DNA of 63,605 bases, filler included, from Cercozoa sp. M6MM (Eukaryota; Protista; Endomyxa: Ascetosporea): the NCBI GenBank assembly GCA_040357565.1. It is 13 parts of 13 records of this genome, joined end to end, with 100 filler letters (N's around TTAATTAATTAA, not from the genome) between each part and the next. Parts side by side here need not be neighbours in the genome. Positions count along the whole stretch, not along the records: positions 3,889 to 18,782 come from JBDODJ010000318.1; 12 more parts are not named here. One strand, written 5' to 3'. Made by a program: the position numbers and the translations under genes. Position 1 is the first letter of the stretch. The number at the start of each line of letters is the position of its first letter. Shown here in pieces: positions 4,685 to 5,805 of this stretch. The notes below the pieces were generated by a model. The model saw nothing but the letters and a program-made list of their open reading frames with translations, was not told the origin of the DNA and did not search any database.

Positions 4685-5805
4685 ATGGGCGTGCTCGAGC
4701 AGGTGCTGGCCGCCAAGCAGCAAGGCAATTCGTTCTATGCCAAGAAGGCCTTCCAAAAGGTGTGTGACCCTGTCTGTCTCTGCTGTTCACTTGACCTGAA
4801 TCATAGAAACTACAACTGACCGACTCTGCGTTTCTCATGTGTTATGTTGTCCTTGCTCAGGCCGTGGAGCAGTACACTGAGGCCGAGAAGGTTGCTGGGG
4901 GCAGCGAAGATACGTCTGTGAAGGCCGAGCTGGCAAAGGTGCTGAACAACCGCGCCGCGTGTTTCCTGGCGCTCGGTCGGCCAGTGCGCGCCATCGCTGA
5001 CTGCTCAAATGCAATCGAGCTGACACCCGACTACGCCAAGGCTTTCTTCCGTCGCGCTCAGGCCTATGAAGGCATGCCCTTCCTTGCTGTTGCCCAGCTC
5101 GATGCTTTGCCTCGCATTCAATGCTCATTGTATGTCACACAGACTGCTGCAAGTTCTCTGCGGCCGCCGAAGATTTGCGAAAGCTGCTGGAGCTGGACCC
5201 AACGGTAGAACTGTTCTTCTACTGTACAGAAGAAATGTGCAGGAGTTTTCTGATTGCAGAACGAGCGCGGCAAGTCGATGCTAAGACTGGTGGAGAAGAA
5301 GTTGCACAAGGCGACGCAGTCGCGCAGCAAGAACACCAACGTCGACCCGGCCGAGGTGCAGGTCACGCGCGACGACCAGCTCAAGATCAACAAGTTCGGC
5401 GTGCTCAACGCCGAGCTCGAGGAGCTGCGCGACTCGCGCCGGGAAGCGCGCAAGCAGCTCCGCAATCTCGAGGCCGCCTGCGAGGACGTTGCCCTTCTCG
5501 ACGAGGACGACGAGGACGACGAGGTGCTCCTGCGTGTTGGCGAGGTTTTCATCAAGGTGAACCCCGACGAGGCCGAGCAGATTGTCGAGCGACAGGTGCA
5601 ACATGCTGTGAGGGAGGGGCCCTGCTTGTGCAACTGCGTGTGTTATTGCTGCAAGTAGAAGGAGGAGGCCGAGACGCTCGTGGCGAACCTCGAGTCGCGA
5701 GTCGGCGCCGTGTTGCAGGAGATGGAGCTGCTGCGCACGACACTGTACGCCAAGTTCGGCAACGCCATCGGCCTCGAGCTTCCGCGCGACGACGACGAGG
5801 AATAA
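4685..5805 (+). CDS. PFDN4: TPR (carboxylate clamp) - prefoldin subunit 4 fusion protein, 5 exons
   Basis: Exons 4685-4759, 4861-5071, 5143-5204, 5260-5595 and 5659-5805. The N-half has three TPRs (AKQQGNSFY; VLNNRAACF; YAKAFFRRAQAYE). The C-half, VQVTRDDQLKINKF...LRNLEAACEDV...VGEVFI...LYAKFGNAIGLE, matches PFDN4/Gim3. Confidence 0.9.

Follow-up and report, generated by a model that had tools for sequence, protein, structure and literature searches.

The window analysed here, a stretch of 63,605 nucleotides (nt) made of 13 records of the genome of Cercozoa sp. M6MM joined end to end, contains at 4685-5805 on the plus strand a five-exon gene whose product joins a tetratricopeptide repeat (TPR) domain to a complete prefoldin subunit 4 (PFDN4). 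M6MM is an amphizoic amoeba of the Apofilosa (Rhizaria), placed beside Gromia and Filoreta and next to Retaria, with a published assembly of 23.67 Mb and 52.8% G+C (PMC11069148). The parent contig of the gene corresponds to window positions 3889-18782, in an assembly of 23.6 Mb and 2235 contigs. The translation of each exon was recovered in a public protein of 276 amino acids, MES1912957.1 (hereafter P0001), recorded as "MAG: hypothetical protein MHM6MM_005198 [Cercozoa sp. M6MM]"; the exons were searched singly and not joined here, and the joined protein is the database's own record. Whole-codon exon parts 4685-4759, 4861-5070, 5145-5204, 5260-5595 and 5659-5805 correspond to P0001 residues 1-25, 26-95, 97-116, 117-228 and 229-276, respectively, and the codon split by intron 2 (G before the intron, AC after it) supplies D96. 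In an all-against-all protein search, P0001 was the top match of exon 4, with 100% identity over residues 117-228.

The TPR domain occupies residues 1-139 and consists of three repeats followed by a seventh, capping helix. Pfam detected TPR_1 in P0001 at 60.1 bits, above the curated cut-off, and placed TPR_1/TPR_2 at residues 50-83 and 84-117. The set K11, N15, N55, K85 and R89, the five positions that form the carboxylate clamp in the peptide complexes of HOP TPR1 and TPR2A, is complete in P0001, and the five residues are identical in alignments with RPAP3 TPR2 and with SPAG1 TPR domains 2 and 3. The best matches of the TPR part to solved structures were SPAG1 (2.1e-31, over the whole three-TPR chain) and RPAP3 (3e-18), with further matches to HOP, Tom70/71, SGTA, FKBP51/52, Cyp40, CNS1 and UNC-45, a list that is the clamp-type TPR co-chaperone set. 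Among the database proteins recovered, the best TPR-only alignments over the whole TPR part were those with plant TTC1 (P0152 and P0153; 35-37% identity over ~125 residues), and we classify the N-terminal part as a TTC1-like three-repeat carboxylate-clamp TPR domain. Clamp-type tail binding is predicted for this domain and is, in our judgement, probable; a complex prediction combining TPR residues 1-140 with the last 40 residues of Hsp90 returned a score of 0.02, which counts neither way.

Residues 153-276 constitute a complete prefoldin beta subunit of the PFDN4 type. Prefoldin_2 was detected by Pfam at 60.5 bits (cut-off 27.6) over P0001 residues 157-263, and exon 4 alone gave 1.5e-9. Human PFDN4 (7wu7_4) was matched at 1e-18, with query residues 147-270 aligned to PFDN4 residues 11-132, nearly its whole length, and no other prefoldin subunit was found among the best 60 of 106 PDB matches. 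The nearest ESM Atlas clusters for residues 140-276 were of PFDN4 (0.90, 0.89 and 0.88), against 0.83 for PDRG1 and PFDN2, and the Atlas model had a TM of 0.84/0.89 to a PFDN4 cluster. PFDN4s were also the top matches of the prefoldin part in the representative search, and the C-terminal motif LYAKFG..I.LE is present, as in PFDN4. PDRG1 or another beta subunit was considered as a candidate and is ruled out by the structure match to human PFDN4 and by the Atlas ranking. By these comparisons the prefoldin part is PFDN4 and not PDRG1, which belongs to the prefoldin-like module.

One open exon (5260-5595) encodes both the capping helix and the beginning of PFDN4, with NERGKSMLRLVEKKLHKA and EVQVTRDDQLKINKF both in the exon 4 frame. 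The same architecture was found in P0084, a protein of 283 amino acids encoded on a 1048-nt Logan contig, in which TPR, linker and PFDN4 are collinear with those of P0001. The two proteins align end to end with 33% identity (E 3e-42), with a single 2-residue gap in the TPR part and none across TPR3, the site of intron 2. The P0084 ORF (open reading frame) of 849 nt is intron-free on a contig of ~1 kb, which looks like a transcript. The clamp residues are invariant between the two proteins (K8, N12, N53, K83 and R87 in P0084), and their retention in two proteins only 33% identical overall indicates selection on the clamp. An artefactual merger of two genes is rejected on the lack of a stop codon for the TPR part, on the shared exon and on the conserved collinear homologues. 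We consider it very probable that the TPR-PFDN4 fusion is a real single protein. An earlier note, made from the sequence alone, had described a spliced five-exon ORF with these exon boundaries, all five clamp residues, a fused part identified as PFDN4, and a capping helix and PFDN4 start in the same exon, and had judged a gene-merging artefact unlikely; the piece-by-piece match to P0001, the RPAP3 and SPAG1 alignments, the human PFDN4 and Atlas matches and the collinearity of P0084 bear out this description. The features of the gene are collected in Table 1.

Table 1 Features of the TPR-PFDN4 gene, in window coordinates.
Feature	Position	Strand	Content	Basis
5' untranslated region (minimum extent)	4621..4684	+		run X2 contig begins at 4621; in-frame TAG at 4661
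Exon 1	4685..4759	+	residues 1-25: TPR1 helix A, clamp K11 and N15	start shared with homologue P0084
Intron 1	4760..4860	+	101 nt, GT..AG	spliced out in run X2 contig
Exon 2	4861..5071	+	residues 26-95 and base 1 of codon 96: TPR1 helix B, TPR2, TPR3 helix A; clamp N55, K85 and R89	Pfam TPR_1 6.7e-10
Intron 2	5072..5142	+	71 nt, GC..AG (non-canonical donor)	sequence reading; gap-free P0084 alignment across TPR3
Exon 3	5143..5204	+	residues 96-116: TPR3 helix B	TPR_2 spans P0001 84-117
Intron 3	5205..5259	+	55 nt, GT..AG	retention gives TAG at 5206-5208 in exon 4 frame
Exon 4, part 1	5260..5328	+	residues 117-139: TPR capping helix	AlphaFold2 helix 118-139; SPAG1 and RPAP3 capping helices align
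Exon 4, linker	5329..5367	+	residues 140-152, between TPR and prefoldin	AlphaFold2 model, mostly non-helical
Exon 4, last part	5368..5595	+	residues 153-228: PFDN4 N-terminal coiled-coil helix and beta hairpin	Prefoldin_2; AlphaFold2; run X1 contig
Intron 4	5596..5658	+	63 nt, GT..AG	read-through meets stop at 5656-5658
Exon 5	5659..5805	+	residues 229-276 and TAA stop: PFDN4 C-terminal coiled-coil helix with LYAKFG motif	aligned with human PFDN4 to chain residue 132
Internal ATG (M123)	5278..5280	+	sole candidate start for a stand-alone PFDN4	direct sequence reading

Only two public runs, X1 and X2, hold parts of the gene, and the RNA type assigned to both is a guess. The run X2 contig joins 4621-4757 to 4859-4916, and after a shift of 2 the cut can be placed exactly at the GT..AG limits of intron 1, which was removed in this molecule. 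Ahead of the ATG at 4685 the transcript includes 64 nt or more, and an in-frame TAG precedes this ATG. The run X1 contig lies entirely within exon 4 (5355-5587). Of the introns that the earlier note had proposed to verify on transcripts, intron 1 is absent from the run X2 contig, and introns 2-4 fall outside read coverage; their support is comparative and derives from the end-to-end alignment with P0084 once the introns are removed. Retention of any of introns 2-4 would break the frame or introduce a stop. The GC donor of intron 2, whose sequence runs GCATGC...ACACAG, is required both by the annotated protein and by the gap-free P0084 alignment.

Word-based protein searches, swamped by TPR proteins, returned no TPR-PFDN4 fusion besides P0084 and the M6MM protein itself, and in a metagenome scan with the alignment of these two fusions, run with TPR-only patterns, 12 of 12 loci matched the TPR part only, with nothing found by tblastn for the PFDN4 part. 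Two ESM Atlas clusters consist almost wholly of members with Prefoldin_2 and TPR_1, one of 83 members (~257 amino acids, mostly Oomycota) and one of 61 members (~326 amino acids, mostly Bacillariophyta), both with a score of 0.91 and sharing 170 and 173 features with P0001, respectively; the diatom cluster is auto-named "Hsp70-Hsp90 organising protein family". The clusters and P0084 together make a Sar-wide distribution of the fusion likely. The fusion is recurrent and not unique to the M6MM genome, contrary to what the earlier note had implied. That note had also allowed that the architecture might prove to be already widespread and described: it is widespread, as P0084 and the Atlas clusters indicate, but a TPR-PFDN4 fusion was nowhere described in the papers recovered by full-text searches, and a paper on oomycete domain fusions makes no mention of it. 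The architecture, built of known parts, appears to be undescribed, in agreement with the note, whose author knew of no description. A structure-based Atlas search separately matched a 76-member oomycete cluster (~460 amino acids) in which TPR_1 occurs with alpha-type Prefoldin (PF02996), so that TPR fusion in oomycetes may extend to a second prefoldin subunit.

Other domains were found at the N-terminus of PFDN4 in related proteins. Among the 150 listed representative-search matches, P0022, P0032, P0048, P0079, P0109 and P0144 are zf-MYND-PFDN4 proteins, to which P0077 (from its precomputed Pfam entry) and P0169-P0171 (from a later word search) can be added; P0079 (EP01083 P012016) comes from the foraminifer Nonionella stella and P0169 from the transcriptome of Ploeotia vitrea. 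These fusions measure ~175-227 amino acids, and their PFDN4 parts share the signatures VLWEDQ.RIN.FGRLN and DDDACK. In P0104, a protein of 318 amino acids present on 7 Logan contigs, FKBP_C (2.4e-31) lies N-terminal to a complete PFDN4. The PFDN4 of Chlorarachnion reptans (P0083; EP00467 P014305) bears a lysine-rich N-terminal extension of ~63 residues in which no Pfam family was detected; by eye, this extension loosely resembles the linker of the FKBP-PFDN4 protein. In a quick tree of 100 PFDN4 domains, one group of 23 rows took in P0001, P0083, P0084, the FKBP form and every one of the eleven MYND forms included in the tree, with a modest SH-aLRT (approximate likelihood ratio test) value of 88, not starred, in a tree most of whose forks are unresolved. 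The foraminiferal MYND form is the partner of P0084 within this group (85). By BLAST, the PFDN4 part of P0001 and that of P0084 are not mutual best matches, and the TPR part of each is about as similar to plant TTC1 as to the other. These sequence relationships are compatible both with one fusion followed by later module swaps and with several independent fusions.

Partners with tails of the EEVD type are encoded in the same genome. The M6MM Hsp90 (contig C120; locus L003, ORF 1516-2052) ends in ...DASMLEEVD, and the cytosolic-type Hsp70 (contig C353; locus L014, minus strand, last exon) ends in ...GPSVEELD, a tail that varies from EEVD. The genome also has two alpha-type prefoldin loci, one of them clearly VBP1/PFDN3-like. 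A search of the genome for close paralogues of the TPR exon found none. A genome-wide search for RPAP3_C (PF13877) gave no match, with controls equally silent, and is hence uninformative.

AlphaFold2, run on an alignment of 38 sequences, gave a model with a mean predicted local distance difference test (pLDDT) of 89.9 and a predicted TM score (pTM) of 0.66; a mixed alignment, in which TPR-only proteins were misaligned onto the prefoldin part, was not used for folding. The TPR part is modelled as seven helices (3-12, 16-37, 43-62, 66-79, 84-96, 100-113 and 118-139), with pLDDT averaging 97-98 in the 10-residue blocks covering 101-130. The linker (140-152, ~13 residues) is mostly non-helical, with one short three-residue turn, and internal confidence is lowest there, at 84 in block 131-140 and 73 in block 141-150. 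The prefoldin part follows with a helix (153-194), two strands (205-209 and 212-216) and a second helix (218-265), the topology of a beta-type prefoldin. The N- and C-terminal helices of a prefoldin beta subunit pair into one tentacle, with the N-terminus at its distal tip. Because the PFDN4 N-terminus has this position, the TPR domain would be tethered at the substrate-binding end of the tentacle.

On these grounds we propose that TPR-PFDN4 links Hsp70/Hsp90 to prefoldin within the hexamer, in line with the built-in relay suggested in the earlier note, a model that as a whole we hold to be reasonably likely. The PFDN4 part would take the normal place of the beta subunit in the prefoldin hexamer, and the TPR domain would stand at the distal, substrate-binding tip of the tentacle. 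Its clamp would grip the acidic tail at the C-terminus of Hsp90 (MLEEVD) or cytosolic Hsp70 (VEELD), and clients could move between the Hsp70/Hsp90 and prefoldin/CCT systems with no separate adaptor. These two systems are commonly presented as distinct pathways, and the known link from TPR proteins to prefoldin, in which R2TP joins the prefoldin-like module, is not covalent and does not involve PFDN4. A covalent clamp TPR-PFDN4 kept across deep protist lineages constitutes comparative evidence for client exchange at canonical prefoldin, and the fusion is a ready-made minimal construct for hand-over tests in vitro. It also supplies a hypothesis for the way in which Arabidopsis PFD4 brings LSM8 to Hsp90, namely via a TPR protein (PMC7293050).

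Several points weigh against the proposed link or against the gene model beneath it. Introns 2-4 are spanned by no read or contig in runs X1 and X2, and the donor of intron 2 is GC. Assembly of the hexamer with a load of 150 residues at the tip of a tentacle is assumed, the binding of Hsp70/Hsp90 tails is putative, and the Hsp70 tail ends in EELD, not EEVD. What the Atlas clusters provide is a lead from one tool that compares features, read from its cluster listing. A second, unfused PFDN4, which the earlier note had suggested looking for, was not found by searches of the genome with the Prefoldin_2 profile and the exon 4 protein, both of which matched only this locus, although this absence is weak evidence, the search having been made exon by exon in an assembly of 2235 contigs where a copy could have been missed.

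The unspanned introns would also suit a gene with two products, in which the internal start M123 (ATG 5278) gives rise to a working stand-alone PFDN4 of ~154 residues and the TPR form is minor or an artefact of gene prediction. M123 precedes by 25 residues the conserved EVQVTRDDQ at which PFDN4 homology starts, and the only contig in the PFDN4 part, that of run X1, is silent on the upstream sequence. However, a TPR domain deprived of exon 4 would lose its capping helix and any stop codon, any transcript that began in intron 3 before position 5235 would have an out-of-frame ATG (5235-5237) as its first, and the collinear fusion recurs in P0084 and in large Atlas clusters, all of which makes this explanation improbable. 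Still less can be said for a TPR domain that is degenerate or purely structural, one that does not clamp peptides but might aid solubility, self-association or tentacle regulation. Clamp binding is a prediction from sequence, and the departure of the Hsp70 tail of this genome from EEVD would be in keeping with such a role, but P0001 and P0084, which share only a third of their residues overall, both retain the whole set of five clamp residues, and we regard loss of the clamp function as very improbable.

A different question is whether a real fusion might act in assembly in the manner of R2TP and the PAQosome (dynein arms, RNA polymerases, small nuclear ribonucleoproteins), or bind another acidic C-terminus, and not serve actin and tubulin folding. 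SPAG1 and RPAP3, the best structure matches of the TPR part, are TPR proteins of R2SP and R2TP. In other PFDN4s of this loose clade a zf-MYND or FKBP domain is present, and both ZMYND10 and FKBP8 are partners of Hsp90 in the pre-assembly of dynein. The link between PFD4 and Hsp90 in Arabidopsis concerns LSM8 and not tubulin (PMC7293050). These points are countered by the identity of the prefoldin part, which is PFDN4 and not PDRG1, the beta subunit of the prefoldin-like module, by the generic nature of clamp-type TPR similarity, with TTC1 giving the best database matches, and by Pfam, which finds no RPAP3_C, the RUVBL2-docking domain, in P0001. An R2TP-like role is unlikely in our estimation.

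The model in which TPR-PFDN4 connects Hsp70/Hsp90 to canonical prefoldin is the one we prefer. A broader, tentative reading, towards which we lean little, is that adaptors of the Hsp90 system generally dock at the N-terminal tip of PFDN4 in eukaryotes and that Sar protists made this contact covalent more than once. It would cover the TTC1-like TPR in M6MM, oomycetes and diatoms as well as zf-MYND or FKBP in foraminifera and their relatives. If it were true, the fusions would act as a Rosetta stone from which the TPR adaptor that underlies the co-operation of PFD4 and Hsp90 in plants could be read as TTC1 or a relative.

About 110 nt past the stop codon of the gene, at 5913-5970, a run of 18 A is followed by a run of ~22 G that abuts a run of N at 5971-6069 (a 100-N scaffold gap); either the genome is of low complexity here, or the runs are an artefact of assembly or reads at the contig edge. 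The contig starts with a (GT)n/(CA)n microsatellite (3889-3931). No Pfam family was detected in ten of the longest ORFs (at least 110 amino acids, both strands) of 6070-18782, and the genes of these remaining 12.7 kb are probably split by introns.

Compared with known systems, the fusion agrees with PFDN4 and its yeast counterpart Gim3 in Prefoldin_2, in the helix-hairpin-helix topology and in the LYAKFG..I.LE motif, but the known forms are stand-alone proteins of ~130 residues, whereas the M6MM form has 276 residues and carries a TPR domain of 139 residues and a linker on its N-terminus. With TTC1 (TPR1), an Hsp70/Hsp90-binding co-chaperone, it shares the insertion between TPR1 and TPR2 and the motif KAFFRRA.AYE; TTC1 has an acidic N-terminal region, a C-terminal tail of its own and no prefoldin, while in the fusion the TPR domain is N-terminal and PFDN4 follows. 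RPAP3 and SPAG1, in R2TP, R2SP and the PAQosome, likewise provide a clamp TPR that links Hsp90/Hsp70 to a prefoldin-type hexamer. In R2TP this link is made non-covalently via WDR92 and RUVBL1/2, to a hexamer that holds PDRG1, whereas in M6MM it would be covalent and involve PFDN4. The resemblance to HOP/STI1 is that of an adaptor, a clamp TPR bringing the tail of a chaperone to a second chaperone system. HOP, however, combines three TPR domains with DP domains and connects Hsp70 with Hsp90, while P0001, in which Pfam finds a single TPR domain and no STI1 domain, would form a bridge to prefoldin. A further parallel comes from Arabidopsis, where PFD4 co-immunoprecipitates with Hsp90 and the Hsp90-LSM8 interaction is PFD4-dependent; the authors left unclear whether the contact between PFD4 and Hsp90 is direct and named TPR co-chaperones as candidates (PMC7293050). 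There PFD4 and Hsp90 act together as separate proteins with a suspected TPR mediator, whereas in M6MM the TPR is part of PFDN4 itself.

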